Positions 1,625-24,423 of a stretch of DNA of 64,000 bases are shown here, piece by piece. The notes under the pieces were generated by a model that worked only from the letters and a program-made list of their open reading frames with translations, was not told the origin of the DNA and did no database searches. Position numbers and translations under genes: made by a program. Origin of the DNA: Ranitomeya imitator (lineage: Eukaryota); assembly GCF_032444005.1 (NCBI RefSeq), contig NC_091289.1:161200001-161264000 (forward strand), written 5' to 3'. The stretch's first letter is position 1; each line of letters starts with the position of its first letter.

Positions 1625-1676
1625 ATGAAGAACATTGCCATCTTTTTGCTGGTTGGTCTCGGCCTCTTCAGCAGTG
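1625..1676 (+). CDS. Ranaspumin-like exon 1 (signal peptide)
   Basis: caccATG...AGTG|gtaaga; MKNIAIFLLVGLGLFSS+G, phase 1. Confidence 0.8.
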
Positions 1677-4600
1677 GTAAGATATCTGATAGATTTACTG
1701 TAAGCCACTTGTTGATATATTATACATATATTATGCATTAAATTAATATATTAAGGTGCTGAATTAATGACTTTACACTTATAACCACAGAGGAAAATGG
1801 GACCATATTTTATTCTTTTTTATTCCCTTTGTATCCCTGAGTAATGTATTTGTTTTAACCCTAGATATATAGTGCTTTTTAGTTTGTGCTAATTTATATG
1901 GTGTTTACCAAAACAGCGTGGCTTGCAGGATCCTCTGGGGTGTGTCTTTAGGCTTCTCTGCCTTATTACCCTGTGAGCTACGCCCCCTTGGTAAAGACCA
2001 TTAAAATTTTAATTAGATAAAAATGGCCATATCTGTCGGCCTATTTATAAAAAAACAAAACTATTGTCAGGGGAGCAGCAGGAATAATATAAGAGCAAAA
2101 ACTGGTGATTTCTTACATCCATTTGTGGTCTGGAAAGTTATATGTTGATTTCTATCTACCCACTATTTAGTGACATAATTGTTGGCGGCTTGGCTGATTG
2201 CTAGGTCTTGTATATTAGTTCATAGCCTTGAACAATGTCACCAGCAAACTGGCAAACACAGAAGAGGGCCCCTGTGCAGGAATGATATATGGGCCCTTTG
2301 CAGTCCAATAGCTCCTCATAATGCGGAATTCTACCTGTTTAGGAGGTGGAAATGGGCCCCCTTACCTTGTGGGCCGCTGTGTGGCCGCACAGGTTGCACC
2401 AATGATATGTCAGTCCCTGTGCTAGCCTCTGCTTAATTATAGGCAGCTGCTTTGCCTATAGTCCATACTTTACACTGCAGCTTTGCTTATGCAGATAGTT
2501 CAGCATGTTAAAATTTCAAGACCACCACAAACCTAACGGACAGTGATGTAACGTAAAGCTTCAGCAAAATTTCCAATAGAGTTCCCACTACCATTTGTTT
2601 TTGATAGTATTGGTGTTCTCATGTGGGCCAAGGAGAATAGAGAGTTGATTTTTCTTTAGAACAATTGTAAAAAATTTTGTAAACTACAATCTAACAACTA
2701 ATATTATCTAGTTAACAATGTATCAGCAAAATATTGTTTTTACAACAACTATTTGTTCAAGCGAGCAAGCATCATATAATGGTTTGTAAGCAGAAATGCG
2801 AAAGTTATGAATGTAACAAACTGGCATTTTTTTTGCTCACTATATTTATTAGGTCTTGTAATATATTTTTTTAAATTGTTATTTTTTTCATTTCAGGATA
2901 CAGCATTGACGTTAACGACGTGGCAGGTTTAGGTATAGACATAAATGATTGTCTAAACGCACTGTTCCAGGTATTTTTTCTTTTAACTCAACTTTAAATA
3001 GTGAAACTGAAGCTATAAGGCTATGTTCACACATTTTGTTTTTTCAGCTTCTTTTAATGCAAATTTTCACCTGAGTTTTATAATACCAGCATAGTCTATG
3101 AGATTTCAGAATTCTCATGCACACAGCTTGTTTATTTTTTTGTCTTCAGTATTTTGTGCAGAACCTTGGGTTTTACAGAATGGGCATGTTGCTTATTTCA
3201 GAGTTTTTTCCGAGTATTTCACCCATTGAAAGCAATGGTGGTGCAAGAAACGCTGAAAAAAAAGCAGGTAGCAATTTTTGCTGCGTTTATGTTGCCAAAA
3301 CCTGATGAAGTAGAAACAGATTTTTTTTATGCACTGAACTTTATCAGCATGCACAAGAAACAAATGTACCATGATAAAAACACCAAAAGCACAGGGAAAA
3401 ACGCAACAAAAACTAAGCAAAGCCTGCGTTTTGCTGCAAGTTTCCTACTGCCAAGAGAGCAGGTTTTGCCTGCAGAAAAAAAGCATAAAAAACGCAACGT
3501 GTCAATTTTTTTTAATAAAGAAACCCAACTGGAATAACAATTTTTAGCCCAAAATATATGCATTTATGTTTAAAAAAAAGTCCCTAATGTTGAAGCTTGT
3601 GCTTTTCTTCAAGGCATAACATTAAAAAATCTCCAAATATGTACTAATTTTACATTACTGTATAAATTACATACTGTAATATTGAACTGTATTATATTAA
3701 TCTTTGATCATTTTACATTTTAATAGAAAGGACCTGAGCTGCTTACTTCACTCGCTGGCATTGCCTGCAAGAAGCCTGACCAGGTAATTCACTTTATTTC
3801 CCACTACACAAGTTGTTAAATATGATGATACAATAATTACAATATAGAACATAATACAGTAATCTACTATATTCCGTGGATTAAACTGTAACTGCAAAGC
3901 TCAACTGCTAATGGAAGTCCCAGGTGGACAATGACCCATATGTGTGGGCAGGCTCGGACTGGCCCACAGGAAAACAGGAGAATCCTCCGGTGGGCCACTG
4001 TGCAAGAGTGGGCGATCAGTACTTGGCACAATATACTTGAATATATACTTGGCATCTTATTAATTTAACAATCTACTCAGTTTATTATTATATAAATTTG
4101 TGATTGAGGATAATGACACATTTGCATGTAGTTGAAAAGTAGGACCCTGGAATTAGTTACTGGTGAGCCCTTGGTACCCCAGTCTGACACTATGTGTGGG
4201 TGATATCCATAAATTGGTTGCTGTCCATGTCAATTTTCAGTCACTTTTCTATTATAATGTTAGATTAACACAAGACCTTTTACTGTTTCAATGGCATAAT
4301 GATGATCTGTGTTCTGCTGCCCGTAACAACCAATCACAACGCATCTTACATTTTTCAAGAGCAGAGTACAAAATCAATGCTGAGTTTTGATAGGTTGATA
4401 TTTTCGTTTCAACATTTTCATAAGTCACTCCAAATTGGATTTGATTCAAATTTCCTCAAATTTGAGTGAATATGAATATGTGGGAGGTCAAATTGTACAA
4501 ATCCATCAAAATGATGGCCAGCCAGCTGCCAATTTGCTGAGATAATATGGGCTTGGAAGCCATAAATATGCTCAGTAAGCCCCTCAGTTGTTCTGGTCAC

Positions 4601-7600
4601 CTCAGCTCCTCACCAGTCCTCCAATGGCTTCTCAAGGCACCCATCATCTCCAGTGCCAGTCTCACATTCACCCTTTGCCAGTGTTTCTGACGTTAGGTAA
4701 GCTTCAACGCATGTTCTGATGTTATGATGTCTTGACATTCTCTGTCTCACTTGAATGCATCAGACAACACATGAAATGACATCATGACTGATGAAGAGGA
4801 GACCGGTGGCGAAGTGGATCAGGTGCCTTTAGAAGCTAGTGGAGGGGTGAGGAGCTGAGGGGTAAGGGGCTATGTATGCTATGTTATTGATTTTTAACCC
4901 CTTCCCACCAATATGCTTATTATTCTCCAAGGTTGGGAGACTTCACAGCATAATAAAATTTTTTTCTCTTTTTACAATGTGAATTGAATTTCTTGGCTGA
5001 ATTTAAGCGAATTTGCTGAATTCAATTTTTATCAAATCACCAATTTAAATACTATATCTTCAATTCAATCATTTAAAACATAGTCTTTATTTCAATCATT
5101 AAAAAGTTATATATCAAATTAATTTCAAAATTTTCCCTAAAATATATTATCCGACTCAAGTCTTTTTTGTCTGTATTCAAAGAGGGAAAGGTTTCACCGT
5201 AATAGGTTTCTAATATACGTCACTCATACTATAATCACAAGAGCAAGTTAAATCTAGTCTAAATTAGATTTATGAAACACATAATGAATGATCATCGCTA
5301 AATAAGTATGAAAATTAGTAATACACAGCAGCATCGATAAATGCTTTAATATTATAGTCTACCTCTAGATATAATTGTACAGTTTGCATGAGATATTACA
5401 GCCAGGGTGCACAACCTTTTCTGATCCGATGGTCACAATGTCACATTGAATCACTTTGAAGGGCCAAAATAAAACCTATAAGTGTCTTTCCATCAGAGAG
5501 ATTTCTGGCAAATCAAAATTAATTGTCTCGTAGATAGGAATCTGAAAACCAGTAAAAGAGGAAGACCATGTGTGAACGTGGTTCTACCCATTGTAAACCT
5601 GAATGCCATAAACTACAAGGTGGAGAGCTACAAGTATAGATGGCCAGATGTAGAACTCATATACATCTTTTTGGAGTAACAAAGAGGGGTCAAGGGACCC
5701 CATACTCCTAAAATTTGTTTTGCATAAATGACTGCTAACCCTTTTTTTTCATGGAATCTACTGTACATGCAAAAATAGTTGCACGCAGGTCAAGCATTTC
5801 TGTAACCAGATGCTTGGGGGCTGCACGGAATGGTATAGTGGACCACATCTGAAGCTTGTGCACCTCTGATTTACATCAAAAGTTAAGCAGATAAATTGCT
5901 TGTATTGGCCCTGAGAAAGGTGGCATTCACAATAAATCTCTGGGCGAGGTTGCCATCTTTATGCCCTGAACAGTGGCATTCATACCATAGCTGAAGGGTG
6001 CATCCAATGGATCAAAGCCTCATCCATTGCGTGCTCACTAGCTCCTTATTCTGTGTCTTCAGAGAGGACAGCATTCAGGATATAAGCATTATTTTACTTA
6101 ATGTTTTGATAATATTTTCTTGAGTTTATTGTATCTACTTATAATTACTATGTGTGAATATTAAATTGGACCAATAATAAAATACACAATTGTTCTGATC
6201 ATGCAATATAAAATAAGAAGAGCATGGACAACAGAAATGCAAGTATTTTAATACATGTTAATAATTGAAATAATAACAGTCTAACAATACCTTGCTTCTT
6301 ATGGTTGTAGTCTGATATTGAAAAAGTGAAGAAATCAGTCCAAGCCACCACTGACTTTTTGGTAAGATTTGATTTTAAATGACGTGTTCTAAAATACTAT
6401 AGACTATAGTAGCTAAATTCGAAAATGTGCAACATCATAATTATTTAACTCATTTAATATAAGTGCAGTACTACATTAAATTACCTTATAGCTGGATCAG
6501 AAAACTTGACTTAGGCTATGCTCACACGATGCATTTATTTAGCGGATTTTTTATGTGTTATATTATATGAAATAAAAAAATTATTTCTGCAAATTTTCAG
6601 CTGCTTTTTACAGTACCAGCAAAGTCTATGAGATTTCAGATATGTTATGCACACAGCTTGGTTTTAGGTCCTCCGTATTTTGTGCAAAACCTTGGGTTTT
6701 GCAGAATGGAGCATGTCACTTCTTTCAGCGTTTTTTTCAGCATATTTCACTCATTGCAAGCAATGGTGGTGCAAAAAACGCTGTAGAAACGCTAAAAAGA
6801 TGCAGGTATCATCAGTTTTTGCTACATTTTTGGTGCCAAAACCTGATGAAGTAGAATCAGATTTTTTGTACCCTAAATTTTATAAGCATGCACAAGAGAC
6901 AAATGTACCATGACAAAAACACAGGAATAGAACGCACAAAAATGCAGCAAAAAATGCAACAGAGACTAAGCGAAACCTGCTTTTTTGCCACAAGTTTTTT
7001 ACTGCCAAGAAAGCAGGTTTTGCCTGCTGAAATAAATGCAACAAAAACACAACATGTGATCATAGCCCTAGCCATATTTCTAACATGCAATGAGAGGTCA
7101 AAAGTCAACAAATCTCTAGCCAGTCCAAGTAGTCGGTGTGTTTTATCTCAAGCAAAGCCTGATTTAAGTATATATATATATAATTTGCATATTTACATAA
7201 CATAAATACATATGTAGTAATCCTTTATTTGTCAGACGGCTCAATACTTTTTATTACTTTTACTGTTTATTAACAAATCCATGTATCAAGTTATCTGACA
7301 AGTTATGAATTGTTGCACGAGTACAGGATCAGAACAAATATCAGCACATGAATGCAGCGTCAGAACCACCATCAGTACAGAAATACAGCATCACAACCAT
7401 AATCAGTTCAGTAATACATCACTAGAACCATCATCAGTACATGAACACATTAATAAAGCTACCATAAGTATATGAAAATAGCACCATAATCACCATCAGT
7501 ACATGAATACATGACCAGTTCCACCATCAGTACATAAACACATCGCCAAACTTAGTACAATGATCAATTGCAATGTCAATTCAGTCCCATATACAATTGT

Positions 7601-10600
7601 ATCACATGAAACTACTACTCCCAGTGTGCTCTAAACAATGGTAAAGAGATACTGGGAGTTATTACCAGCCATTATCAGATGGCAGACCATACAGGAGCCA
7701 CAGTAGTAATGAGATGTAGTCAGCATCACAAATTAACATTTACATCCAGTTACTGGATGTCTCTTCTGATTGAAGTTGTTCTTTTTATTTTCTTCTACAT
7801 CTTGTCTAGATGCCATGATGACTTTTTATATCCAAAGCACTTCTCTGAAACCTTACATCTTCTCCGGTCTTCTGTAGCACACACCAACTCGGTACCCTTA
7901 AAAATAACAGCATGATTATAATGTTCCTGCATAAAAATAGTTGAAGAGAAGGAATATAAACCAGCTCACCCGTGATGCATAAGCTGAGTTTCGGGAACAC
8001 GGACCCGCTGTATCCAGGCGTGTAGAATCCAAGAGAAGAAAATGTCCAGCTTCACCGAATCCATGAAAAAAAGTTTTCTTTATTCACAAACTTAAACATG
8101 GAGGATACAAACTTCAGCACAAACCATATGGGTAAGAATCTCAATGCGTTTCTGGAGACTAAGCTCCCTTAATCATGACCATTCACGCGTTGAGATTCTT
8201 ACCCATATGGTTTGTGCTGAAGTTTGTATCCTCCATGTTTAAGTTTGTGAACAAAGAAAACTTTTTTTCACGGATTCAGTGAAGCTAGACATTTTCTTCT
8301 CATAAAAATAGTTGCCCTATGTTGTGCCCTTGAATAAATAATTGCCTCCAACTATGCCCCCTGCACAAAATGTGTTCCCCACACTGTCACATTTATTGAA
8401 CATGGCCTCCACACTGTCTTGTCCTATAAAATATTGCTTGCATACCATCCCCCTTATGAAATATAACTACTACACACTGCCCACCCTAAATTAGCTATAA
8501 CTGCCAGACTGCCCTTATTAGCTATATTCACCACAATGTCTGCCCTGGTGCTATAACAACTACATTATCCCTATCTTAAGTTTTCTTCCCCAAACTGAGG
8601 ACTCCCTTTTCACACTGTCCCCTCACACTGTATCCCCCATACAGCTCAGTCTCTATACTGTACCCACTGCTCACTTTTTCCCCTCTGCATGCTATCCCAT
8701 ATACTGTGCCATCATACGTACAGTCCCTCTTTGTTGCTCCCTCTCTATACTGTGCCCCATACTGTCTTCCCATATTGCCAAGTCTCTATAGTGTGACCCC
8801 ACCTCACACTCCCTCTTCTACATTTTGTCCCCTCCATACTTTGCTATCACGCTGCCCATCCATGCTGCCCCCTCTCTATACTGTGTCCCATACTGTGTCC
8901 CCTCACAGTGCCCAGATTCTATATTGTGTCCCATCTCTTACATTTTAACTGCTCTAAATACTATCTACTCCATACTGTGCCCTCATACCATTCTCCCATG
9001 CTGACGCCTTTCTACACTGTCTGTCATCTTGTCCTTTCATACTTTCCAGTCGCTATACTATGCCCCTTTCTCACAACTTCCCCCCCATATTGCCCATTTA
9101 CACTGTCCTTCACACTCCCACCTCTCTATATTGTCCACTCCCACATAGCTTAGTCTCCATACTGTACCCCCTCACACTCACCATCCCCCCAGACTGTCCC
9201 TCCCAAAAAAAACCTACCGTTTCTCATGCTCCATTTGTACGCTTAACTTACTGCCATCTTCTACTCCTCTGTAGCTCAGCAGTGACAACAGCAATGTGAT
9301 CTGATAACCTCATCACGCTGCTCACATTGCATTGACCCTGGAAGTGATCAGAGCTTTGACCGTACTGGTATCTGATGTGAGTGCGATTGAATTCAGGGAG
9401 TCGGCCTTTCACATGTTCTATGAGCGAGCTGTCAGTCTAACAACCGGCTCAAAGAATGACCAAATCCCACTGCCGGGGAACGGCAAAATGCCGCCTGGGA
9501 GACATCTCAGATGACCACATTGATGACCTTCTAGTTTCACTCCAGTAATAATTGTGCTGAGCTACTCATATTATTCTTGTTTGATTGGTTTATTGCCAAG
9601 AGCATAACGTTTGCAATTGCCGCTAACAGTCCTACTTTTCAATAGTGTTTTTGATTGAAATGTTAACAATTCAGTTTTCTTTTTTATAATTTTACAGATT
9701 AAAGCAAACTGTTTGCCTGGCGATTTAGTTGGCCTAGACGTAGTAAGTTTTTAATAGTTTTTTCATCAAGGAAAATAATTTGTATTAAAAAGAAAATGTG
9801 TTTTTTTACATTGTCATGGCAATTATTTTTTTTTTATAATTGACTATTTGTCCATATAGAATGGAATATCAGCAAGTAGGATAAGGGATAACTTATTGAT
9901 CAGTGAGAGTCCAATCTTTGAAACACTCATCAATCCCAAAAATGGGGTTCTATATAATTGTGTGGATAGAGGTGCACATGCTCGACCTCCACTTTGTTCA
10001 TTGTCTCTGAGTTTACTGGAAATAGAGGAGCTGTGTACTTGGCTTTCTCCTAAAGACTCACAGAGACTAATAAAACATGCACACCTCCACTCAATTCAGA
10101 AAGGGCTCTCCCATTGTCAGGATTGTTTGGGTATATACACTGATTCCAATGATGTGTCATTTATTGGACTGCTTGCTGTAGTTTTTGGCAAAATCACTGT
10201 TTTATCAACAGGACGTGATCAATAGAGGACTAGTAAACCTGCTGCCATGTAGTCCTCTATATTCATAAGCTCTGTATAACCCCAGCAGAGCGGAGCGTGC
10301 GGCCGCATAGCAACACATGGAGCCGCACGCTCCGCTCCGAAGTGCCGGCGCCAGAGCTTGCTGTTCATATGCGAGACACGGACGTGTTTCTCGCATGTGT
10401 GACTCCGGCCTATCAGTGGTGTGCGCGGAGTTAACCAGGGCTTAATATTCAAAGAAATGGTACATCTGCAGCAGATAAAACTGTGATTTTATTAAAACTG
10501 TAGCAAACAGCCTGGTAAGTGATACACTACTGGAATCAGGGTCACTTCTCCTATATTATGGTGCTCTCCAATGGTGTTACAAAAAACTGGTGACAGATTA

Positions 10601-13600
10601 CCTTTAAACTCATTGGAAATGTTGCCCATTCACTTCCCCCGTATTCCAGTCTTCTTCGTCCCCTGATAACTCTTAGAATCTGTCATTATGTGCCCCACAA
10701 AAACAGTCTATCAGGCAGAGAGCAACAGTTTTCTAAACAGGAGACTGGTCGCATATAAGATAAGGTTATTTTAGAGGATTTTTTCTATATATACTATCAG
10801 AAACTAAAGATGTTTTATGATCTACACTAAGTAATAAAAAGTAGTCCAAGTCCCAATCCAACAAAACGGTAGTTCTATGGTAGCACAACAGATGCTGATG
10901 TAAAGGTGCTATTATATGTATCAGTTTTCCACTGACAGCGCAGTTGATAGCATCGTACAAGAGGTGGAAAATTCTTTTTTTTCTAATTAAAGGTTTTTGA
11001 TTGGTTTTATAACAAAGGTATTCAACAATAAGAAAGCTGTTACAATTAAAGAGCAAGAGTTGTGGACATTTACCGTAAATATAAATTACTCAGCAAGATA
11101 GAGCCAAGACATATAATTTAAGAAACTTGGTGACGGTGTGACTAATAGCCAAGTAGTCTTATAAAATCTACAAACTTAAGAGAACAGTGGAGAAGGGATA
11201 TAACCGGGGTAGGAGAACGATAAAGGATGGGAGACTTAGCCCCCGTCACACATAGCGAGATCGCTAGCGAGATCGCTGCTGAGTCACAAGTTTTGTGACG
11301 CAACAGCGATCTCAGTAGCGATCTCGCTATGTGTGACACGTAGCAGCGACCAGGCCCCTGCTGTGAGATCGCTGGTCGTGTCGGAATGGCCTGGACCATT
11401 TTTTGATCGTTGAGGTCCCGCTGGGTAGCACACATCGCTGTGTTTGACACCTTACCAACGACCTCTTTGACAGGACGTCCCATTGAATCGTCATGAAATA
11501 GCATCGTTCTACAGGTCGCTACAGGTCGCCGCATCGCTACTGCGTCGTCGGGGAGATCGCACTGTTTGACATCTCACCAGCGATCACATAGCGACGCAGC
11601 AGCGATCCCTGACAGGTCGTATCGTTGTCGGGATCGCTGTTGCATCGCTAAGTGTGACGGGGCCTTTAGAAGAAGAGGTTTGGAATATGACCATGGGGAC
11701 TTGTCGAACAATAATCAGGCATACAATGCGCCAAAGTTGACGAGATATCTGAGAATAAAGGTGGATGATGAGATTCGTGGGCAGAATTAGGTGCAAAGGA
11801 TATAGATTATTTCAGGATATTTTAGTAAGCTGGGCAGGATAGGGTAATTTCCCAGTGAAACCATTTAGATGCTCCTTTCTGCTTGTCTTTGAGCTTCTCC
11901 AAACGGTGGGCCGCATCTACAGTTACTCTCAGAACCATTCTCCCATGGAGGGAGGGTCTACAGACTTCCGGTGACAGGGGATTATCGTTTCCACTGTTTG
12001 AAGGAGCAGGCGTAACAAGGTTTTCCTGTAGACATATCTGGACTTAGGGAGCATGTATAATAAGATCACTGCTGGAGTATTTAGGAATTATCACTCCTGC
12101 CACTTCCTAGATACAAATTCATATTTTCTTTATTTTCCCTGAGCTCTAAAACTACATGACCCTCTCATTAACCTAAGTTGCCATATATTAGAAGCCTAAA
12201 TTAAAATATTATATATACTGTTCCCACTCTATGTAATCAAAGACTGTTGGTTTTTTTCAGCAAAACGTCGCGGATGATGTACTTGATGAAGTGAACAAAA
12301 TGTATCTATCTATCGTAAGTTGTGTTTACTATTGCTATAAAACTAACTCAGTAATGTACATAATTACTAGATTAATTCACAGGCGCTAAGACATGGGCAT
12401 CACTTGATTGGATTACTTCACTCAGCTCATTAATATTTGTGAATGCATTTAAAGGTGTCCAGATTAATAGTGTTTACTACTCACTTTTAAAGGGATTGGC
12501 TCCATGGTTCAGGAGTGCACCGCTTTTCTGCATCCCAGTTTCCTGCTTTCCAGGGGGTGGTGCGCTTCTAATGATTGACAGCTTGGACCAGTAACATTGC
12601 CATGTTGCTGGTTATCAAACTCTACATTGTCCCATGCTGGAATCAGAGGCCACGTTGTTTCTGCAGCATTCGAGCACAGTGGCACTGGAGGATGATGGAT
12701 CCGGACAGCTTCAGAACTGTGCTGGCAAGCAGTGGGCAAGAGTGCCCTCTTTTCCTAGAAAATCAACCCCCTCTGATAGACTCCAGAGGTGTCCGGTAAC
12801 CTAAGCAATAAGCAGTGACCTGTAAAATTAAAAATCCTTCCAATCTTTAAAACGGAAAGGATTTTTAATAAGATATTAATTGTAAAGTTGCTTGTTTCTA
12901 CAAGCATTTTGAAATTTTACTCATGTAAAGCATTTTAACAATTCTATCTGCCCCTTTAAAACATTTTAACAATTTACACAGTCTAAATAATTTACATCTG
13001 TAATTTACTTCCTATTTTCTCCTTGGAGCTCGTGGAACAGACCCTCCCAAGTTTGCATCCTACATTGGATCTATGAGGCCTCATTCATACATCCAATTTT
13101 TTCACTTACGTGAAAATTGGATTGATTATTCTGATCAGACACTGATCAGAGTGTGCTATGAGTGTCATCCAATTTTCTCGTACGTGGAGAAATTTAAAAA
13201 AATCTATCTATCTGTATTTTTCTATTTCAAGTGTTACAATGGGGTCATGCCAAATGACCAAAGCTAAAGGGAATTTGCCATTGGTTTTATGTTGCCTGAG
13301 CAAGGAGCAGCATGAACCTGAGACTGGCTGTGTAATTGCAGTCAGGCATTATTTACTCAGCCTGCATTTTGATAAGCCATCTGGGAACTATAAAGAGAGA
13401 CAAGACCAGTCTGAAGATGCCCCTGATTGTCTTCTCCCCGCCCTGCTCCAGTACATTGACAGGTCTTTCTCATATGTGTATATAGGGAGGGACCTGTCAA
13501 TCAACTTGGACAATGAGGGAAGCAGCAGGCCGGGGACCGCACCGGACTAGTCAGATCTCTCCCTTATAGTCTTTGGCTGACGTTTCTGTTGTTTATGAAG

Positions 13601-16600
13601 CACTATAGTGTTCCGAATCCAGAGTGAAACATACTTTGCTGTTATCATGTCAGGCTCTGATTCTTACTGCCCGTGGTTCAGGTAGAATGAATCTCATGAC
13701 AGATTCCCTTAGAAAAACAAAATGAAAGAAAGGAATGGGAATTTTTATTAAGCAAAAACATTTGTCTTTTAGTTTACACTTATTTGCTACGCTGATTATA
13801 TGTGTGATAGTAAAAACGTTATCTTTTCTATACCTCTAGGTCTCTGATCATTTAGAGCCCCTCAAAGTCGTGATGCCTACAGTATGCACACTAGTAAGTT
13901 CATTGTCTAATAATTACTTTATCAGGAACTAATAACATACGTTTTACGCTTCTCTCACAATGGATTCAATGTGCATAAATTGTGCTGCTGCTGCGTGGAC
14001 GCTCCATATTCTGCACAACATTGGAATTTTATAGGAACCAAGTGCGTTGGAAGAATGAATCTAAGTAGTGATCAGACTTTAAACTAATACATGACAAAAC
14101 AATGTGCTATGAAAAGATCCAGCAAATCGTGAGTCTTGATTACTAGTGAAACCACTATTAGTGTCATACTTCATGCCAGTAACAATTTTCCTATCCACTT
14201 TTTGACATTTTTTTTATGGTGCTTCATCCCAAATGAGATGTTCTCCAACAAAAATGGACTGTGTAATGGTAGGATGGATCCCACTGCTCTGCTTCTTATA
14301 GATGCAATGCATCCCAATAGCTGCCACATAAGATAAGTCCTACAAAAGGAAGGATAAGGTGTTTTCTAGGAAAGAGCAGTAGCAGCACTAATGGTCACAT
14401 ATTACATGTGATTATGAACATTTCTGTGTAAATCCAAATGCTACCTGCCTGGGACCAGCACTGGCTCTCCACAGTGTTGATATCATGACTACAGAATACA
14501 TTACCACTGCAGCCAATCACTGAGCTCAGTGATTGGCTGCAGCGTGGATGTGTACTGTAATAGTGATAACAGCAGTACAGTCAAAATACAGAGACCGGAG
14601 CATCAGCGAAGACATGGCTCTGGACCCCGGGTAGATGAGTGTCCTCTGATTTCATTATTTTTACGCAGCGCTGGTCATTAAGAGGGTGAACTTGAAAGTG
14701 GAAAACCATTTGATAAAATACAAGTTACTCTCAAATTCTTCATCAGCCAGAAAGTTTTAAAAGAGGAACTTCTATTATTCTTCCATTACTAATAATGAAC
14801 TCACCTTAACAAAATGTAAAATAAATACCTCATGTTATTAAAAATATTGAACTATGTAGTATGTTTCCATATTTTTTCCTGCAGTACTTGTCTCCTACAG
14901 TGGATTATTTTCTTTTTATTTTCTTTACAGTTAAGTCCAGCTTTGACATCAAATTGTGTGCATGAGCTCCTCCAGGTAAGAAGGAATTTCTACTGTAATA
15001 GTCTGAATTTTACCATGGAATTATAATTTGCTGCAAACGACCATGATCCACATAACTAATTCCATGTATATCCGACCATGTTGTACCCAATGTCCTAGTC
15101 ATTACATAACATTTTTACTGACTAGACAACCCTTTTAAGACATAACATAACTTAAAGGGAACCTGTCTCCATGGAAAACTCTGTTTTCCTTCAGATATAG
15201 GGTTAATCTTTTAGGTAATTAGTGTTACAATGCTCCCTAGCCACCTTAATGAAAGCGCAACTAATGGGAGGAAATTAGCTTATTTCGTCCCAGGAGCCGC
15301 TGGCTTTCAGTCATGGGGCATGTACGAAGCGGCTACAGTTATCGCTCACTATTCATTTTACTGTGATTTGCGGCTGTAAGCATGTCCTGGCGTTTTGATT
15401 GACAGCTAACGGTGCAGCACATTTGAGCAGAGCAAGCTGTGAGTTGAGAAACCAGCCTCAGCTCACAGTATAATCAGCATGAGCAATGAACCCCATGACT
15501 GAAAGCCGGTGGCTCCCAGGAGAAAATTAATTATTTTTTTTTTCCAGGAAGCTGCACTTTTGGATAGGCTAGGGGCACACAACCGTTTTTCTCTTATCTG
15601 GGAAACTCAATCCTGTTATGCTAATCACACTCTGGTCAGAGTTTGATCAGAGTGTGATCCAATTTTTTTCTATATGGAGAAGGAAAAACAAAAATTCTTT
15701 ATCTTCTCTATTCTGTCAGTCCGTGAAAATCAGACCGCACTCGGTTTGTCATCCGAGTGTAGTCCAATTTGTTCCTCAGATCCATACACATGAATGGCTG
15801 AGTATGATCTGACAATCAGATGCATCTTGTGCATGCTGCAATTTTTTTCCTCGGACCGACACGCTATTTTTTGTATTTTCTACTAATAAAACAGAAAAAT
15901 GGCTTAAAATTATTATAGGTCTTTGTTGCTTCATTCTTCTGTGCACGGTGAGAGGTGTCATTCTTAAATCAAATGTTAATGTGAATTTACACAAATGTAT
16001 AAGGCGACATAATTACATAGGCTGAAACGACCTAGGTCCATCAAGTCCAACCTTTCTCCACCAATTGTGCATTTTGTCACTAAATTAACTATAACCCGCA
16101 ATGTTATGTGTATCAAGGAAATCATCAAGCCCTTTTTTAAAAGCTGTTAACGATGCAAACTTATCTGCCTTTTCTTCTGCTCTTTCAGACTGTAGGTCAC
16201 TTGACTGACAAGGTGAATATTTGCAAATACAATGTCATCTATTATAATTTTCCATTTAATGTAATAAATCTTGGCATAGCCAAAAGTTTCAAAAGTTTCT
16301 GCACTCGACTGGTCAAGAAAACAAGATTCAAAACAGCAATACAATCACTATGTGCTAAAACTTTTCACAGAGGGAAAAAGTAGAGAACCGTATATAAAAA
16401 CTCTTGTGTTCTGTCGTTATTCCTACAAGCATTTTAACCTGTTGTTATAATGATTACACCCTTTCATGCAACATAATGTAAAAATGTCCAAACTGTGTGT
16501 GTGGAGAAGGACTGAGATGATCGTGGTATTTAAACCATTATTAGGAACTTTGACATTTAAATGGTTACGTAGAAAATCAGGCCCCATTCTGTCACTCCAT

Positions 16601-18525
16601 CAGGTCACCTGATGTTAATGTGGGGTGCAAATTGGGCTGTCGTGATATCTGAAAGGCTTAGTGAAGACACCAAGTTCTGTTTCGATCAAGGCTAAATAGA
16701 CATTTGCTGACAGCTCAGTATACTACAATACCAAGTATTACAGTGTACTGTAACAAAAAACTAAAAGGCTTAAATTCCCACTGTGAAATCAAGAAGATCC
16801 CGGCAATCACATAGGTTTTTTCTTGGTTCCTTTATTCAAAAAAGCTGGCCGGGTTTCAGCACAATGACTGTTAATGATATCTTTGGATGGGCTGAAACGC
16901 GTGAGGGCTGGGACCTTCTCGATTCCCCATTAACTACTCTATCCACGTGCCTCACTGGAGCGAGTCTTCGCATTGGCACAGGATGACAGAATTTGGAATC
17001 CTTAAATAGTTCTTATAACTGGGTGTATGCAGAGTGTTCTCCATATTTGTTTTCTTTACTTTAAGGGAAGCTATCACCTGAAAGAGACCAATTGTTTAAA
17101 TCATGTTCTTGTTTTAAAAGTATTAGGAAAAAAATTGGCTTTTTTAATATTTCTCAATCTGTAATAAAAACAAAAACAATATAAAATCTTGCAGTTCATA
17201 TATTGACCGCTGGGATCTTTTTTAGACTCAGACTTTCCATAGTTTCAGGAAACAGCACATGTATGTACCCTTGAAGGTCAGAACCCGCCCCTATCTTTTG
17301 CATTGAAGTGTCTGATGAGCATGTGCAAAAGTAATTGTGAAGGGATGGGAAGCAGGGTCTGCTGTGACATCGCCTATTATGATTGGTGGATCCTGTGTTA
17401 TCAGCTGTGTACACAGGAGTTACCTGTCTTTCTAATCCTGTCTCTGATGGTAAGGACCATGCTTTTTTTTTAATGAGTTTCCATTGCGTAAAAACACTAA
17501 AAACGCATGTGCATTTTTTACCTGTGGATTTTCTGCATCTAATGCAAGTCTATGGGGGAAATCTGCATAGAAAACTCAGCGTACTTGCAAGAGAAATTGA
17601 CATGTTGCAGATTAGAAAAACACACCAGCGGTCAGTTTATGCTGAGCAAAATAGAAGCACAGTGGCCAGGAGATTTTTATAAATCTCATCATCTTTGCTG
17701 GAACTGGAAGACACTGTGTTTTTAGTGAAGCAAAAAAAAGCAGCTTCAAAGAAAGCGCTAAAATCTCATGGTGGGAATGGAGCCTTAATGTTAGAGAACA
17801 CAACTGTAAAGCTCACGTGAAGCATATACCTGCTAAAATACAGTGCAGACTTTGAGGCTAAGTGACTAATATTTGCATTTTTTGTTTCAGCTTGGAATCA
17901 AGTTATTATCGGGTCTTAAATGTCAGGTAATGAAAAAAAATGTGTTCCTTATACTGATTTGGCTTTTATCCTAAGTCATATTGCAAGACTCATTAAAGGG
18001 TTGGTTGTGACTTGTAGGATCGCTACTTCCAATAGGTGGCGCTATAGTGTTCAAGTTCTCTTTTTCTCTGAAGAGGCGATTTGCATATTATAGTCCTTAT
18101 TTTGTCGAATTTCTTACTTGAAAATTATGAACAAGACCAGTAATGTAAATGACACATCGCCATTCTAGGCCACTCGGGGCTGAAGAGGTTTAGTACAAGT
18201 GACCCACAGATGAGTCCTCTATTACCTTTTCTTCAATTCGGTTTTCAAGAATATTCTAGCATAATCTTTGACTGACCATAATTCACATCAGAACCACTGG
18301 ACACATCGCACAAACCATCAATATCCAAGAAGATCAATAAGAAAAACAAATAGTAATTGAAATGAAATCGCTGTCTTAATAAAAAGTCTTATTAACATTC
18401 ATATTTTGTTTTGTTTTTTCATAGAATACAGACCCGAACAGCATTAATTTAGAAACAGTAAAAAAAGTCTGGGTAAGATTGAAATACAAACATCTATCTC
18501 GTTTTAGTATTGGGTTCATAAATAC

Positions 18526-18575
<50 letters not shown>

Positions 18576-18716
18576 GTATATATATATATACACATAAGCA
18601 CATGAAATGCACAAGATATACATATTATACATGTATATTATAAGTATATGCATATATACAATAGCTTTGGGTTGGTTCACATATATCTAAGCAGTTCTAG
18701 TACTGAGGTTCATACA

Positions 18717-18769
<53 letters not shown>

Positions 18770-21700
18770 CATATTTACGCATATGATAAACAGAGTATAG
18801 ATATACACATTTTATACATATGATATATAATATTTATGATATAATGATATGATGATATTCCTTTATAGGTATATACATATATATATAATGTGCCATGTCA
18901 GTAGCTAATTTACTTTTTATGTATACTGTTTAGTCTTACCAATCATCAACTTGCCTAAATGTAGAACATACTAAAATCTTTGCTTTATTTGTGTTTAAGA
19001 GTAAACTAGAATGTGGCTTGGGTCAAGCTTTGGATATAAAAGGATTGGTAAGAAACTATAGTTATATACTATAAAAATAGTAAGTGCACTTTGTCTTTGG
19101 TACCATGAGTTACTTTCTTTCTTTAACACTCACTGCCAATGTCTGGTGACGGCCAAGAAAACTAAACAAAAAAAAATTCATAAAAGTCCCAGAGATCTCT
19201 CCCTTCTTGTCCTTTTCTTGTTCATATTCTGACTTCTATTGCATTAAAATGAAAGCTCTGTTGAACATCTCGCTGTGTACATCCTACTTCATCTATTGAC
19301 ATTTTTCGTCTTTGCACAAGCCTATCTTTGCCTGCTTAAGACGCTGCAGTTCTCTTCTATTTGTACCACTGGCGGACACGGACAGAACAGGATGGGACCT
19401 TTGACATCCGACAGTTCAACATAATGCACAATTCCACCTGCTTTGGTAGCGGAAAGGGGTCCCCTTACCTTTAGGGCCCCTGTGTGGCTACACGGGTTGC
19501 ACCAATGATATGTCCGCTCCTTATGTGTACAATAGAAGACACAGAAATTAAAGCGCTGCATTTTTGATAGAGGAAAATGGCAAGAGATAAATGCTTGAGA
19601 AATGCTAGAGAAAAACATTTACGGTATTTCAGGAAAATGCAGAAAATCAAGTGCTAATGCACATTTGACATTTACATAATTGTTTTCTTTTTTATATGTG
19701 TATTCAGTATATATGAACATGTTACTTAACCTTCTAAAAAAAAATGATTTGTATCCCAATAATATTTTTCAGGAATTAGTTACTGGTCCAGCCAAGTCTG
19801 TTGTCAATAATGTTGTATCGAAAACCGTTAATGAAATTCTGGTAATTAATATCAACATTCCTTATCTACGTTTCCTCTTGGGTCAGTTTCACACATTCGA
19901 CATTCCCGATCTTATATATGAGACTGCTGAGTGCAGGTCAGTAGCCTGGAAAGCCGGTCTGGACATTGCGGTCCGTTGTTAGACCATGAATGTCAGATGT
20001 ATGAAACCAGCCTTTGTCTCAGGCCTCGTTCAAACATCTGTTTTTCTCATGTACAAAAAAAATTGGACCAATAATTTTGATCAGAGTTTGACCAGAGTGT
20101 CATCTGTTTTTCACATATGAGGATAAAAGAAAAAAGTTTCTCTACCTTTACACCGGTCCGTAAAAATCGGACTGCACTTGGAAGTTATCCGAGTATGGTC
20201 CGGTTTTTTTCACGAACCCTTAGACTTGCATTACCGATTTTCATCAAATCAAATTACGGTAAGCATGTCTCCTTGATTTTCCACACACCACTCGGTCTGC
20301 GAAAAATCATGGACATATAAAAACCACAGATGGCACTCATACGCTAATATCAGACATACGAACAAGGCCTTAAAAGTATTTCTTATTGAATATGAACGCC
20401 AAGCATTATTAATGACAGGTTGCATGAGATCCTAATAATGAATACCTTCATTGTTTTTGTCGCTGCCCAACTAAAGCGCAATGACTTTAAACATTGAAAT
20501 CAACCATTTTTTCAGATTCTCTATTTGCAGAACTATGGAAGATTTCAGATGTGATATTGGGGATACAGCTACAGTTGTGGCCAAAAGTATTGACACCCCT
20601 GCAATTCTGTCAGATAATACTCATTTTCTTGCTGAAAATGATTGCAAACACAAATTCTTTGGTATTATTATCTTCATTTAATTTGTCTTAAATTAAAAAA
20701 ACACAAAAGAGAATGAAGCAAAAAGCAAAACATTGATCATTTCACACACAACTCCAAAAATGGGCCAGACAAAAGTATTGGCACCCTCAGCCTAATACTT
20801 GGTTGCACAACCTTTAGCCTAAATAACTGCGACCAACAGCTTCCGGTAACCATCAATGAGTTTCTTACAATGCTCTGCTGGAATTTTAGACCATTCTTCT
20901 TTGGCAAACTGCTCCAGGTCCCTGATATTTGAAGGGTGCCTTCTCCAAACTGCCATTTTTAGATCTCTCCACAGGTGTTCTATGGGATTCAGGTCTGGAC
21001 TCATTGCTGGCCACCTTAGAAGTCGCCAGTGCTTTCTCTCAAACCATTTTCTAGTGCTTTTTGAAGTGTGTTTTGGGTCATTGTCCTGCTGGAAGACCCA
21101 TGACCTCTGAGGGAGACCCAGCTTTCTCACACTGGGCCCTACATTATGCTGCAAAATTTGTTGGTAGTCTTCAGACTTCATAATGCCATGCACACGGTCA
21201 AGCAGGCCAGTGCCAGAGGCAGCAAAGCAACCCCAAAACATCAGGGAACCTCAGCCATGTTTGACTGTAGGGACTGTGTTCTTTTCTTTGAATGCCTCTT
21301 TTTTTTCTCCTGTAAACTCTATGTTGATGCATTTGCTCAAAAAGCTCTATTTTTGTCTCATCTGACCAGAGAACATTCTTCCAAAACGTTTTAGGCTATT
21401 TCAGGTAAGTTTTGGCAAACTCCAGCCTGGCTTTTTTATGTCTCGGGGTAAGAAGTGGGGTCTTCCTGGGTCTCCTACCATACAGTCCCTTTTCATTCAG
21501 ACGCCGATGGATAGTACGGGTTGACACTGTTGTACCCTCGGACTGCAGGGCAGCTTGAACTTGTTTGGATGTTAGTCGAGGTTCTTTATCCAACATCCGC
21601 ACAATCTTGCGTTGAAATCTCTTGTCAATTTTTCTTTTCCGTCCACATCTAGGGAGGTTACCCACAGTGCCATGGGCTTTAAACTTCTTGATGACACTGC

Positions 21701-23842
21701 GTACGGTAGACACAGGAACATTCAGGTCTTTGGAGATGGACTTGTAGCCTTGAGATTGCTCTTGCTTCCTCACAATTTGGTTTCTCAAGTCCTCAGACAG
21801 TTCTTTGGTCTTCTTTCTTTTCCCAATGCTCAATGTGGTACACACAAGGACACAGGACAGAGGTTGAGTCAACTTTAATCCGTGTCAACTGGCTGCAAGT
21901 GTGATTTAGTTATTGCCAACACCTGTTAGGTGCCACAGGTAAGTTACAGGTGCTGTTAAGTACACAAATTAGAGAAGCATCACATGATTTTTCGAACAGT
22001 GCCAATACTTTTGTCCACCCCCTTTTTTATGTTTGGTGTGGAATTATATCCAATTTGGCTTTAGGACAATTCTTTTTGTGTTTTTTCATTTAAGACAAAT
22101 TAAATGAAGATAATAATAACAAAGAATTTGTGTTTGCAATCATTTTCAGGAAGAAACTGACTATTATCTGACAGAATTGCAGGGGTGTCAATACTTTTGG
22201 CCACAACTGTATATGAAATTTAGGTTTCAGACTTTTTACATGGTTTGTTTGCTCAATATGATTACAAATATACTTTTTATTTTTAATTTTTACAGAATAA
22301 TAAGCAACTTGAATCAGTCATGACTGGCGTTACCTGTCTTGTGGTGAGATTAAGAATTCCTATCTTAGTTACTTTTTGTCATTTAGATTTCATGTACTGT
22401 TAATTTTATCGTTCTTTTATATTTAACGTTGGATTTGAGAGTTGTCTTCTTTTGAAATTCACTTGAAATAACATATGCTAAGCTAGTAGAAGAAGGGTCC
22501 TCTTCCGACCTGTCAGTAAAACTAAAGAAATGAACCGGAGCATAAGGTGGTTTACATAAAACGAATAAGGGCACGTTCACACTGTGGCCATTTAACATGC
22601 TTAACCCTAGGATAGAAACAAAATGAGCAAATACCCTGCTGTAAGTAAAGAGTAATACTATATAATAGTAATAGTGTATAAATATCATAGGGTACTTAAT
22701 AAACATTGTTTTTGAAAAAAGCACAAAAGCGATCCACCCGTGTCAAAGTGAACCCCAATTGTGATGCTAGAAACAGGGGTGTGGTCCCTATTTTTGAGGT
22801 AGGCATTTCATTTATATAACTACCAATGACTGGGTGCCTGAACAGTCAGACCTCAGACCTCTGCCCCTATCTACATTGAGGTCGTTTGACACAAGGTGAG
22901 GTTTTAACACTAGAGGATAGGACCATCCCGATTGGGTTCACCTTGTCGCGGTGGGATGGCTTTTACAGTTTTTTTCTATCAAAAGCAGTGTTTACTAAGT
23001 ATCCTATGTTATTTATATGTAGAATTACTGCTTGCTAACAACTGGGATATGCTCATTTTGTTTCTATCTTAGATTTTATCTCATATACTTCTATCAGTAT
23101 TGTATCAGGTTGAAGAGCCTGTACTTGCTTTGAAAATGCATGCAACGCATTTAATTTTGTCACTCGCTCATTTCCATAATGTAAATACAGTTACTTTCCA
23201 TCTTCATGCACGATTAATGTTTTGATGTCAAAATCTTCAAAGTTCTATGTGGCAATTAAACTGCTAATTTAGACAAGTGTCTTGTAAGCTGCCTCTAGTT
23301 GGCCACTCAGTAGCCCTTTGTCTTAGCTTTTGAAATGATGGACTGTATGTATGGAGGCGCTCTATCAGCGACACTGTTTGGGGGCAGTCTTTAACTTGTA
23401 ATGCAAATCCAACACTAGATATATAAATTAACATGGTATAAGGCTGGGGTCACACTTGCGAGTTCAATGTGAGAAACTCGCATCAATTCCCGGCACTGCC
23501 GCCATCACTCGGGACCGGAGTTTGCAGCTGCATGTATTTCTATGCAGCCGCATGCTCCGGTCCGAACCGCCGGCGGCAGTGCCGGGACTTGATGCGAGAC
23601 ACTCACGCGAGTTTTTCGCATTGAACTCGCAAGTGTGACTCCGGCCTAAGAAATGAAATGTTTCAAAGAACTGCCATACAATATCATTGTAAAATACTAA
23701 AAAATGTTTTGGAATTAGTGTTGGATGCAGTGAAGGTAATTTATGTCATTTTTTTTCCATCGCTCACATAAATCATATTGAAATATATCTATTTTTTTCT
23801 CTTTCCGAACAGAATAACGTACTCGGGGTGGTCAAATTGTAG
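1625..23842 (+). CDS. Ranaspumin (Lv-RSN-1)/ranasmurfin-like secreted protein, 236 aa, 14 coding exons
   Basis: Exons: 1625-1676, 2897-2970, 3727-3783, 6311-6361, 9698-9742, 12261-12314, 13840-13893, 14931-14975, 17891-17926, 18425-18472, 19000-19047, 19773-19841, 22296-22343, 23813-23842. All have AG/GT boundaries and join in frame (711 nt): MKNIAIFLLVGLGLFSSG YSIDVNDVAGLGIDINDCLNALFQ KGPELLTSLAGIACKKPDQ SDIEKVKKSVQATTDFL IKANCLPGDLVGLDV QNVADDVLDEVNKMYLSI VSDHLEPLKVVMPTVCTL LSPALTSNCVHELLQ LGIKLLSGLKCQ NTDPNSINLETVKKVW SKLECGLGQALDIKGL ELVTGPAKSVVNNVVSKTVNEIL NNKQLESVMTGVTCLV NNVLGVVKL*. It has a signal peptide and 8 Cys. The family call rests on my recollection of the Lv-RSN-1 sequence, not a search. 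Confidence 0.8.
2897..2970 (+). CDS. Ranaspumin-like exon 2
   Basis: tttcag|GATAC...TTCCAG|gtattt; YSIDVNDVAGLGIDINDCLNALFQ. Confidence 0.8.
3727..3783 (+). CDS. Ranaspumin-like exon 3
   Basis: taatag|...|gtaatt; KGPELLTSLAGIACKKPDQ. Confidence 0.8.
6311..6361 (+). CDS. Ranaspumin-like exon 4
   Basis: ttgtag|...|gtaaga; SDIEKVKKSVQATTDFL. Confidence 0.75.
6514..7067. mobile_element. Harbinger/Tourist-like MITE (related truncated copy at ~3019-3503)
   Basis: Termini ggctatgctcacac...gtgatcatagcc with TTA/CTA flanks; internal sequence shared with 3019-3503. Confidence 0.65.
7944..8300. mobile_element. Penelope-like hairpin insertion with 14-bp target-site duplication
   Basis: cataaaaatagttg is duplicated at 7930-7943 and 8301-8314; ~117-bp inverted arms at 8033-8149 and 8185-8301. 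Confidence 0.6.
9698..9742 (+). CDS. Ranaspumin-like exon 5
   Basis: ttacag|...|gtaagt; IKANCLPGDLVGLDV. Confidence 0.8.
11239..11664. mobile_element. Harbinger-like MITE
   Basis: TIR g(g/c)ccccgtcacac...gtgtgacggggcc; internal gatcgct subrepeats. Confidence 0.7.
12261..12314 (+). CDS. Ranaspumin-like exon 6
   Basis: tttcag|...|gtaagt; QNVADDVLDEVNKMYLSI. Confidence 0.8.
13840..13893 (+). CDS. Ranaspumin-like exon 7
   Basis: ctctag|...|gtaagt; VSDHLEPLKVVMPTVCTL. Confidence 0.75.
14931..14975 (+). CDS. Ranaspumin-like exon 8
   Basis: ttacag|...|gtaaga; LSPALTSNCVHELLQ. Confidence 0.8.
16006..16148 (-). mobile_element. CR1 LINE 3' end remnant
   Basis: acatag...ggtccatcaagtccaacc...aagccctttt resembles the CR1 3' end at 56443-57370. 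Confidence 0.5.
17891..17926 (+). CDS. Ranaspumin-like exon 9
   Basis: tttcag|...|gtaatg; LGIKLLSGLKCQ. Confidence 0.75.
18425..18472 (+). CDS. Ranaspumin-like exon 10
   Basis: tcatag|...|gtaaga; NTDPNSINLETVKKVW. Confidence 0.75.
18529..18765. repeat. Two (TA)n microsatellites
   Basis: TA runs at ~18529-18590 and ~18718-18765. Confidence 0.95.
19000..19047 (+). CDS. Ranaspumin-like exon 11
   Basis: tttaag|...|gtaaga; SKLECGLGQALDIKGL. Confidence 0.75.
19773..19841 (+). CDS. Ranaspumin-like exon 12
   Basis: tttcag|...|gtaatt; ELVTGPAKSVVNNVVSKTVNEIL. Confidence 0.75.
20572..22209 (-). mobile_element. Tc1 transposon with decayed transposase, IR/DR-type ends, in intron 12 of the ranaspumin-like gene
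   Basis: TIRs cagttgtggccaaaagtattgacacc, TA TSD, inner direct repeats near 20770 and 22000. The transposase is split into ORFs 21396-21872 (HTH, GRRPRK) and 20819-21241 (QQDNDPKH...SPDLNPIE), with a frameshift and a premature TAG. Confidence 0.95.
22296..22343 (+). CDS. Ranaspumin-like exon 13
   Basis: ttacag|...|gtgaga; NNKQLESVMTGVTCLV. Confidence 0.8.
22590..23060. repeat. Inverted pair of a ~190-bp dispersed repeat (other copies at 42940-43340 as a tandem pair, and ~63690-63800)
   Basis: Shared motifs such as aaaagccatcccacc.cgacaaggtgaaccc and atgagcaaatacc.tgc.gtaagtaaa; family unassigned. Confidence 0.55.
23442..23646. mobile_element. Harbinger/Tourist-like MITE
   Basis: TIR ggctggggtcacacttgcgag...ctcgcaagtgtgactccggcc, TAA TSD. 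Confidence 0.85.
23813..23842 (+). CDS. Ranaspumin-like exon 14 (stop codon)
   Basis: gaacag|AAT...TTG TAG; NNVLGVVKL*. The exon probably continues to a gtaagt donor after 23871. Confidence 0.7.
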   Translation, partial: NNVLGVVKL

Positions 23843-24423
23843 CCATTTAAGAGAAAATTTAAAAAAGAAATGTAAGTATTAAAGCATCAAATGAAAATAG
23901 GTCTTTGACATGAGAACAAGGAGTGTTGCTAGTTGTGTTTGAAAGAGGTCTCAATGCTAAAAGTCGTTCAGCGATGTCTGAAAAGGCACTGTCAGCTTTA
24001 TTCCACCGTCCTCAGAAAGTTGAGTGCAAGTAATATAATGTCTATGACCAACATACACCTTTATCAGGGAAGTGTCGGGGGTCTTAGCCTCCACACTCTT
24101 ACCCTAAGCTCAACTTCTGACATGACTTTATGAAATGTGATATTTTTAGAATTATGGCTGCCCTCCAAAAATGGGTCGCTCTTCCCCTCAAATGAGAGAC
24201 ATATAACGTGGAACTGTCAGTCAGGAGTTTAAAAGTGGCCAGTATTTTTCTTTCTTTTTATATCTACTACTCCTCTAAATATTCCTTTGTTGTCTTCTTT
24301 TAAATCCACCATACGTTTCCAGAGATATAAATAAGGATTTTATTTTGTGCTAATTTTTATGATACTTACCCCCCTTTGCTCATTGGGTAATAATGCAGAG
24401 CAGCCTAAGGTCACACCCTAGAG

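Follow-up and report, generated by a model that had tools for sequence, protein, structure and literature searches.

Our analysis showed that positions 1625–23842 of the analysed window (64,000 nt of Ranitomeya imitator DNA) contain a real, intact protein-coding gene, which has the same span of 22,218 nt in GCA_032444005.1 and had been annotated before but not named. The gene is predicted to encode a secreted protein of two units. This protein probably belongs, as a divergent relative, to the family of Lv-ranaspumin (Lv-RSN-1; UniProt P85507, PDB 4K82/4K83), the foam-nest surfactant of Leptodactylus vastus, and has a putative interface or ligand role outside the cell.

Gene structure and public annotation

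The first-pass annotation had proposed 14 micro-exons that join into a 236-aa ORF. Our splice-site scans, which were independent of its coordinates, rebuilt identical exons of 30–74 nt on the plus strand between 1625 and 23842, and their splice gives 711 nt, corresponding to 236 aa and a TAG stop codon. Every acceptor has a pyrimidine tract and an AG, the donors are GTAAG, GTAAT, GTATT, or GTGAG, and all introns are in phase 0 except intron 1, which is in phase 1. An intact ORF by itself is weak proof of a gene here, because any subset of open phase-0 exons yields an ORF. The splice-site evidence is stronger. All of the phase-0 internal exons (11/11) were within the top 26 of 661 candidates ranked by a simple splice-site score, and candidates with the same score were less than half as numerous on the opposite strand and in two further stretches of 22 kb.

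A phmmer search with the open frame around exon 2 recovered the NCBI RefSeq protein XP_069593800.1 ("uncharacterized protein [Ranitomeya imitator]", 244 aa), which covers the same span and is the exact splice of the 14 exons plus a 24-nt exon at 16189–16212. The 236-aa model thus differs from that of RefSeq only in lacking one in-frame micro-exon, which was either overlooked in the first-pass annotation or is skipped in one isoform. The gene had also been described as hidden. This does not hold with respect to public annotation, but the protein is indeed unnamed there.

All parts of the gene lie on the plus strand. A putative TATA box (TATAAAT, 1562–1568) could be read in the sequence 57 nt 5′ of the ATG. 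Coding exon 1 (1625–1676) contains the ATG and encodes the signal peptide, with residues 1–17 and the first base of codon 18 preceding the phase-1 intron. The mature protein begins in exon 2 (2897–2970, 74 nt) with C36, the first cysteine of unit 1, followed by the LLTSLAGIAC motif and C56 in exon 3 (3727–3783, 57 nt), C83 in exon 5 (9698–9742, 45 nt), and C127 in exon 7 (13840–13893, 54 nt), where unit 1 ends. Unit 2 begins in exon 8 (14931–14975, 45 nt) with C138, and the VC-x10-C motif crosses the exon 7/8 junction. The 24-nt micro-exon mentioned above comes next and encodes TVGHLTDK. The remaining cysteines, given in RefSeq numbering with that of the 14-exon model in parentheses, are C163 (C155) in exon 10 of the 15 (17891–17926, 36 nt), C185 (C177) in exon 12 (19000–19047, 48 nt), and C233 (C225) in exon 14 (22296–22343, 48 nt). 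Exon 4 (6311–6361, 51 nt), exon 6 (12261–12314, 54 nt), exon 11 (18425–18472, 48 nt), and exon 13 (19773–19841, 69 nt) were each identified by the splice-site scan and the RefSeq protein. The last coding exon (23813–23842, 30 nt) includes the TAG at 23840–23842, and 36 nt past this stop there is an ATTAAA (23878–23883), a likely polyadenylation signal. The eight cysteine positions claimed earlier (36, 56, 83, 127, 138, 155, 177, and 225) thus all match the rebuilt protein, and the claimed TATA box and signal peptide (residues 1–18) were found as well.

The introns are rich in repeats. The exon 13/14 intron harbours, on the minus strand at 20570–22211, a decayed transposon of the Tc1/mariner type. 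Its terminal inverted repeats are 141 nt long, and its ORF fragments carry DDE_3, HTH_Tnp_Tc3_2, and Sleeping Beauty HTH domains. No paralog was found elsewhere in the 64-kb window by tblastn.

The protein and its similarity to Lv-RSN-1

The encoded protein is acidic, about 23–24 kDa, rich in Leu and Val, and without Arg. Its mature form has 218 aa (23.3 kDa) in the 14-exon version, and 226 aa in the RefSeq version. It is composed of two tandem helical units of about 105 aa with four cysteines each, and each unit is encoded by 6–7 phase-0 micro-exons. The halves align to each other with z = 4.8, a score reached by 5 of 2000 shuffles, and their exon boundaries correspond. Comparison of unit 1 with unit 2 by hhalign gave an E value of 0.0017, and the first cysteine was invariant in the unit alignments. 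A BPI/PLUNC or latherin-like identity, prompted by the Leu/Val-rich composition, was rejected, as no fold or sequence search backed it.

Lv-RSN-1 is the closest known system. It has 217 aa, 23.5 kDa, two domains, and four disulfides (PMC4929970), and the agreement in mature length suggested by the first-pass annotation was borne out. Both proteins are secreted, with about 217–226 aa and about 23 kDa in the mature form, and both have eight cysteines, the first two at mature positions 18 and 38, and a VC-x10-C linking the halves; two helical domains are predicted for the R. imitator protein as in Lv-RSN-1. However, the two are only about 18–21% identical. They also differ in the second half, which in the R. 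imitator protein resembles a simple repetition of the first, whereas two short beta strands occur in the C-terminal domain of Lv-RSN-1 (PMC4929970).

Profile searches against the PDB sequence set (177,635 sequences) supported the relationship. With the unit-2 profile (A4), Lv-RSN-1 (4K82) was the best match with an E value of 0.0031, compared with 0.36 for the runner-up. With the all-unit profile (A6), it was again the best match (E 8.8e-5), and the unit cysteines fell on Lv-RSN-1 Cys 18, 38, 67, and 114. Lv-RSN-1 had been named beforehand as the relative, and its recovery needs profiles, a single-sequence search being blind to it: phmmer of XP_069593800.1 alone against the PDB returned only noise, with Lv-RSN-1 absent even at E 10. 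The full-length three-species profile (A1) likewise gave only noise against the PDB and no Lv-RSN-1 at E 10. Lv-RSN-1 was not recovered from the PDB with the N-part unit profile (A3) or the unit-1 profile (A5) either, and queries with exon 2 or the 69-nt exon 13 by themselves found nothing relevant among the PDB sequences. Pairwise comparison of XP_069593800.1 with Lv-RSN-1 fragments was marginal, as its scores were equalled in 13 of 3000 and 159 of 5000 shuffles. No Pfam family was matched by XP_069593800.1 or by its relative in R. variabilis, which is closer to Lv-RSN-1, and searches of the ESM Atlas, whether by features or by shape, yielded no lead above noise. The A4 and A6 profiles, and the alignment for the fold model, include rows of this R. 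variabilis model, so part of the Lv-RSN-1 signal is transitive, because the tail of that model is closer to Lv-RSN-1.

The HMMER alignments to 4K82 showed that the cysteine spacings and the LLxxLAxIxC motif named in the first-pass annotation are present in Lv-RSN-1. C18-x19-C38 with LLxxLAxIxC, VC114-x10-C125, and C146-x21-C168 of Lv-RSN-1 have their counterparts in C36-x19-C56, VC127-x10-C138, and C155-x21-C177 of the R. imitator protein, and LLTSLAGIAC is aligned to LLVELAVIIC. Starting at the mature N-terminus, the matches run colinearly, with seven cysteine positions and the VC-x10-C linker in correspondence. Among the second-half cysteines of Lv-RSN-1, Cys 125 and Cys 168 align, and Cys 146 is offset by one residue.

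AlphaFold prediction of the full-length protein from a three-sequence alignment was unusable (pLDDT 38.7). In structural searches with the unit model, Lv-RSN-1 ranked first against 48,161 chains, and among 550,129 Swiss-Prot models P85507 (Ranaspumin) had both the best probability (0.60) and the best TM-score (0.50).

The R. imitator protein would be expected to fold as two disulfide-locked helical bundles. By analogy with Lv-RSN-1, it may be active at interfaces or bind hydrophobic ligands in the extracellular space, and it is only a putative surfactant. Ranitomeya is not known to build foam nests, whereas the host of Lv-RSN-1 does. For this reason the likely site of the R. imitator protein would be skin or breeding-gland mucus, or an oviduct or egg-jelly secretion, and the non-foam role suggested in the first-pass annotation is a reasonable proposal.

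Dendrobatid relatives and alternative explanations

A word-indexed protein search found four dendrobatid clusters only, even at E 10. Among the relatives are Dendrobates tinctorius XP_073427480/XP_073427482 and Ranitomeya variabilis XP_077134822, uncharacterized RefSeq proteins which are orthologs or close paralogs of the R. imitator protein. They have the same cysteine framework and an identical or nearly identical signal peptide, and their mature regions are only 42–59% identical, which indicates fast evolution. The D. tinctorius ortholog, at 42% identity, has the same eight cysteines, and its signal peptide is 100% identical. Its gene is of similar length (22,960 nt), and its two isoforms are distinguished by 4 aa at the position of the R. 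imitator 24-nt exon. The R. variabilis model, which extends over 186 kb, is probably a fusion of neighbouring paralogs, and it has a tail that is much closer to Lv-RSN-1: residues 160–374 matched 4K82 with an E value of 1.1e-8, and the same residues matched mature XP_069593800.1 by BLASTP with an E value of 3e-6 and four cysteines in register. In other dendrobatids, "ranaspumin" transcripts have been reported to be upregulated in male finger glands (PMC12617036).

Three other explanations have to be weighed. A lineage-specific secreted helical cysteine protein unrelated to Lv-RSN-1 might resemble it through convergent Leu-rich amphipathic helices and chance cysteine spacing. We consider this improbable, since two profiles placed Lv-RSN-1 first in the whole PDB sequence set, the structural searches ranked it first among the chains and gave it the best TM-score in Swiss-Prot, and the matches are colinear with corresponding cysteines and linker. 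Moreover, the R. variabilis protein forms an intermediate that bridges Lv-RSN-1 and the R. imitator protein. It is slightly less probable still that the model arose as a computational artefact, or that the locus is a decaying pseudogene without a protein product. The evidence consists of gene predictions, and no record of the exact protein derives from a transcript; the introns are filled with repeats, and an older R. imitator model adds spurious exons. Against this, the ORF is intact over 15 exons with canonical splice sites throughout, and the TATA box and poly(A) signal are in place. D. tinctorius also retains the eight cysteines, the signal peptide, and the gene length at only 42% identity, as would be expected from selection on a secreted protein rather than from decay.

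The protein might instead act like ranasmurfin, as a cross-linking or chromophore-bearing structural protein and not as a surfactant. This seems very unlikely: the similarity values to ranasmurfin are not significant singly, the gene's own unit profiles miss it at E 10, and the protein has two units and the size of Lv-RSN-1, with only two Tyr and two His in its mature form. The ranasmurfin cross-link site involves Lys-Tyr-Tyr-Lys, His, and Zn (PMC2954283). A divergent member of the Lv-RSN-1 family therefore remains our preferred reading. We regard it as a solid family assignment, which alters no major concept.

Ranasmurfin and the wider family

Ranasmurfin of Polypedates leucomystax (UniProt P85511, PDB 2VH3) is a helical protein from frog foam nests, and its 113 aa correspond to about one helical unit of the R. 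imitator protein. It differs from the latter in being a single-unit dimer with a Lys-Tyr-Tyr-Lys/Zn chromophore (PMC2954283), while the R. imitator protein has two units. The similarity is colinear from residue ~13, with an E value of 0.12 and a TM-score of about 0.4, both below significance, and profiles made from the gene's own units did not reach ranasmurfin in the PDB at E 10. Of the kinship proposed in the first-pass annotation, the Lv-RSN-1 part is thus supported by profiles and fold, whereas the ranasmurfin part is weak and only suggestive.

Even so, it is conceivable, though somewhat less than an even chance, that Lv-RSN-1, ranasmurfin, and the dendrobatid proteins constitute one anuran family derived from a helical module of about 105 aa with four cysteines, encoded by a cassette of 6–7 micro-exons. 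One module would be present in ranasmurfin and two, by cassette duplication, in Lv-RSN-1 and the R. imitator gene. Recent literature calls the foam-nest proteins of distant frog lineages unrelated (PMC10146838), and an archaeal origin has been floated for ranasmurfin (PMC2954283). If there is one such family, foam-nest proteins were recruited from an older secretory family which persists in foamless frogs, and ranasmurfin is of ordinary frog origin, contrary to the archaeal idea. Two foam-nest proteins thought to be unrelated would then share an origin, provided that the weak ranasmurfin link holds.

The assignment to Lv-RSN-1 has implications of its own. On its publication, Lv-RSN-1 was presented as structurally unique (Hissa et al. 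2014, as described in a citing paper). Since a divergent homolog appears to be present in a poison frog that makes no foam, its family would be older and broader than foam nesting. The structure of the R. imitator gene suggests that the two domains of Lv-RSN-1 originated by duplication of a micro-exon cassette. The unnamed RefSeq gene of XP_069593800.1 gains a testable identity, and the "ranaspumin" of dendrobatid male breeding glands (PMC12617036) raises the possibility of a function in courtship or in skin secretions.

Exon structure and public annotation of the gene

The exon model of the gene at 1625-23842 (plus strand) was rebuilt by a splice-site scan and then a chain search under the proposed cysteine positions, the first-pass annotation having listed no exon coordinates. 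The rebuilt chain has 14 exons of 30-74 nt each (711 nt in total), which give 236 aa and a TAG stop at 23840-23842, with cysteines at 36, 56, 83, 127, 138, 155, 177, and 225. This agrees exactly with the exon number, exon sizes, intact ORF, and eight cysteines claimed earlier. The TATA box and signal peptide claimed with them were also read in the sequence: the ATG at 1625 lies 57 nt 3′ of TATAAAT (1562-1568), and a typical signal peptide starts at this ATG and has a GTAAG donor at its end. The splice sites are canonical and strong throughout, and the introns are in phase 0 from the second one on. An intact ORF alone is weak evidence, because any subset of open phase-0 exons yields one. Therefore, every open, in-phase AG..GT candidate of the region (661 of them) was scored. 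The top 26 included all 11 internal exons that the model has in phase 0; at that score, the number of candidates was less than half as large in the controls, namely on the opposite strand and in two other 22-kb stretches. The observation of a 14-exon gene is confirmed.

We used a 40-aa open frame around exon 2 (2875-2994) as a query for an exhaustive representative protein search, which returned two proteins. One is RefSeq XP_069593800.1, "uncharacterized protein [Ranitomeya imitator]" (244 aa), whose gene span of 22,218 nt is exactly 1625-23842. Letter for letter, it is the splice of the 14 exons plus a 24-nt exon (16189-16212, plus strand), which encodes TVGHLTDK and has a good acceptor and a GTGAA donor. 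The other is an R. imitator model of older date, whose extra exons are probably spurious. The gene is thus real in the sense of independent annotation. It had been described as hidden; this holds for a prokaryote-style ORF list, and no long ORF was found in 1625-23842, but the gene is already publicly annotated, though unnamed. The 236-aa form represents either an exon-skipping isoform or a missed exon. Alternative use at this site is plausible, because it is also here that the two D. tinctorius isoforms differ, by 4 aa.

In the intron between 16189-16212 and 17891-17926, a short open stretch (17398-17442, plus strand), LSAVYTGVTCLSNPV, is similar to the penultimate coding exon, LESVMTGVTCLVNNV (identity at 10 of 15 residues, tblastn E 0.59). 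It may be a duplicated-exon relic, or a chance likeness.

Repeat units and kinship with Lv-RSN-1

The mature protein of the 14-exon form has 218 aa (23.3 kDa, pI 4.9), is rich in Leu and Val, and lacks Arg. Its two halves are homologous: their alignment has a z of 4.8, a score reached in 5 of 2000 shuffles, their exon boundaries fall at corresponding positions, and an hhalign comparison of the two units has an E-value of 0.0017. Each unit has four cysteines, and the VC-x10-C linker runs from the fourth cysteine of unit 1 to the first one in unit 2. Among seven aligned units from three species, the first cysteine is invariant.

A word-indexed protein search matched dendrobatids only. The D. tinctorius proteins (231 and 235 aa; gene length 22,960 nt) are 42% identical and retain all eight cysteines, and the R. 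variabilis model XP_077134822 (374 aa) shares 59% identity. Signal peptides do not differ between genera, in contrast to the strongly diverged mature part. In the genome, the R. variabilis model extends over 186 kb, and its last residues, GVGIDIN, begin a further unit. Its tail (residues 160-374) is far nearer than its head to Lv-RSN-1, the foam-nest surfactant of Leptodactylus vastus (phmmer E 1.1e-8 over residues 8-130). We infer that several neighbouring tandem ranaspumin-like paralogs were probably fused in this model, which implies a ranaspumin-like gene cluster in Ranitomeya. No second family member was found within the window.

The first-pass annotation had proposed kinship with Lv-RSN-1 and ranasmurfin, with a sequence search against both. 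Single exons, XP_069593800.1 alone, and a three-species profile found neither among the PDB sequences, even at E 10, and no Pfam family matched the protein; unit profiles did reach Lv-RSN-1 (PDB 4K82). The seven-unit profile gave E 3.7, whereas 4K82 was the top match of both the unit-2 profile (E 0.0031; next match 0.36) and a cleaner all-unit profile (E 8.8e-5), the latter two containing rows of the R. variabilis model. In the unit-2 alignment, the unit cysteine motifs are paired with three elements of Lv-RSN-1: KCLPKILQ, the next cysteine (offset by one residue), and RLPCVLGG; AVC-x10-C of Lv-RSN-1 is also visible. The all-unit profile aligns the four cysteines with Lv Cys 18, 38, 67, and 114. 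The LLxxLAxIxC and C-x19-C likeness is present exactly as proposed: residues 18-38 of the printed Lv-RSN-1 sequence form a C-x19-C whose final residues, LLVELAVIIC, have the counterpart LLTSLAGIAC in this protein, and the mature positions are identical.

Since these profiles hold rows of a model whose tail is nearer Lv-RSN-1, the link is transitive. Both steps are significant, the R. variabilis tail matching mature XP_069593800.1 at BLASTP E 3e-6 (25% identity, four cysteines in register). Direct comparison with the printed Lv fragments is marginal alone, its scores being reached in 13 of 3000 and 159 of 5000 shuffles. The analysis as a whole supports the Lv-RSN-1 reading, and this gene, annotated already but without a name, is a divergent relative of Lv-RSN-1 and new to the family.

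Predicted fold, ranasmurfin, and putative function

In the AlphaFold and Foldseek check suggested earlier, the full-length model was unusable (pLDDT 38.7), but a model built on the unit alignment (target: XP_069593800.1 residues 19-137) showed four helices (pLDDT 74.5, pTM 0.67), and against 550,129 Swiss-Prot models, P85507 (Ranaspumin) was highest in probability (0.60) and TM-score (0.50). Further matches in the AlphaFold DB clusters were an unnamed 151-aa protein (TM 0.64, 27% identity) and Q5M8W8 (243 aa, probability 0.63).

The ranasmurfin link is suggestive only. Its structure, 2VH3, had the best TM-score (0.39/0.41) among the top 50 Foldseek PDB matches, with 21% identity and an E-value of 5.7, and was the second and third PDB match of the R. 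variabilis tail (E 0.12), but none of the unit profiles of this gene reached it in the PDB search. Literature up to 2023 regarded Lv-RSN-1 and ranasmurfin as unrelated (PMC10146838).

Lv-RSN-1 is a monomer of two domains with four disulfides that lowers surface tension, probably once a conformational change has exposed its hydrophobic core (PMC4929970). By homology, the poison-frog protein would be a secreted, disulfide-locked, two-bundle amphiphile; its cysteine framework and, at the level of the unit, its fold are supported, and surface activity may be shared. Ranitomeya clutches are small, terrestrial, and foamless, so a use other than foam is likely. Skin or breeding-gland secretion is a good candidate, because in Hyloxalus, another dendrobatid genus, transcripts called ranaspumin are reported to be upregulated in male finger glands (PMC12617036). 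These may derive from a closer paralog rather than this gene.

Transposons and tandem repeats in the window

The window, from Ranitomeya imitator, the mimic poison frog, has the character of vertebrate DNA: its GC content is about 38%, and it contains decayed transposons. The introns of the gene hold MITE-like hairpins besides a Tc1/mariner copy (20570-22211) with 141-nt inverted ends. Two near-perfect hairpins, at 8033-8301 (arms of 117 nt, 96% complementary) and 24418-24615 (84 nt, 90%), both with loops of 30-35 nt, look like MITE-type insertions. A better-kept Tc1/mariner transposase ORF than the intronic copy, 355 aa and intact-looking, lies at 53765-54832 (plus strand), with DDE_3 and HTH_Tnp_Tc3_2 domains.

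At 26951-29369, a 21-nt unit repeated 116 times (91% matches) forms a minisatellite. It reads open on either strand and so yields fake ORFs (826 and 902 aa). At 37875-39305, where GC content is higher, a 24-nt unit is repeated in tandem 60 times (91% matches); this array has open frames that overlap one another and a DUF3432 match that is spurious. Between them, 34719-36977 is an array of 48-154-nt repeats, each with CCAGCAGGTGGCGC, a CTCF-like motif.
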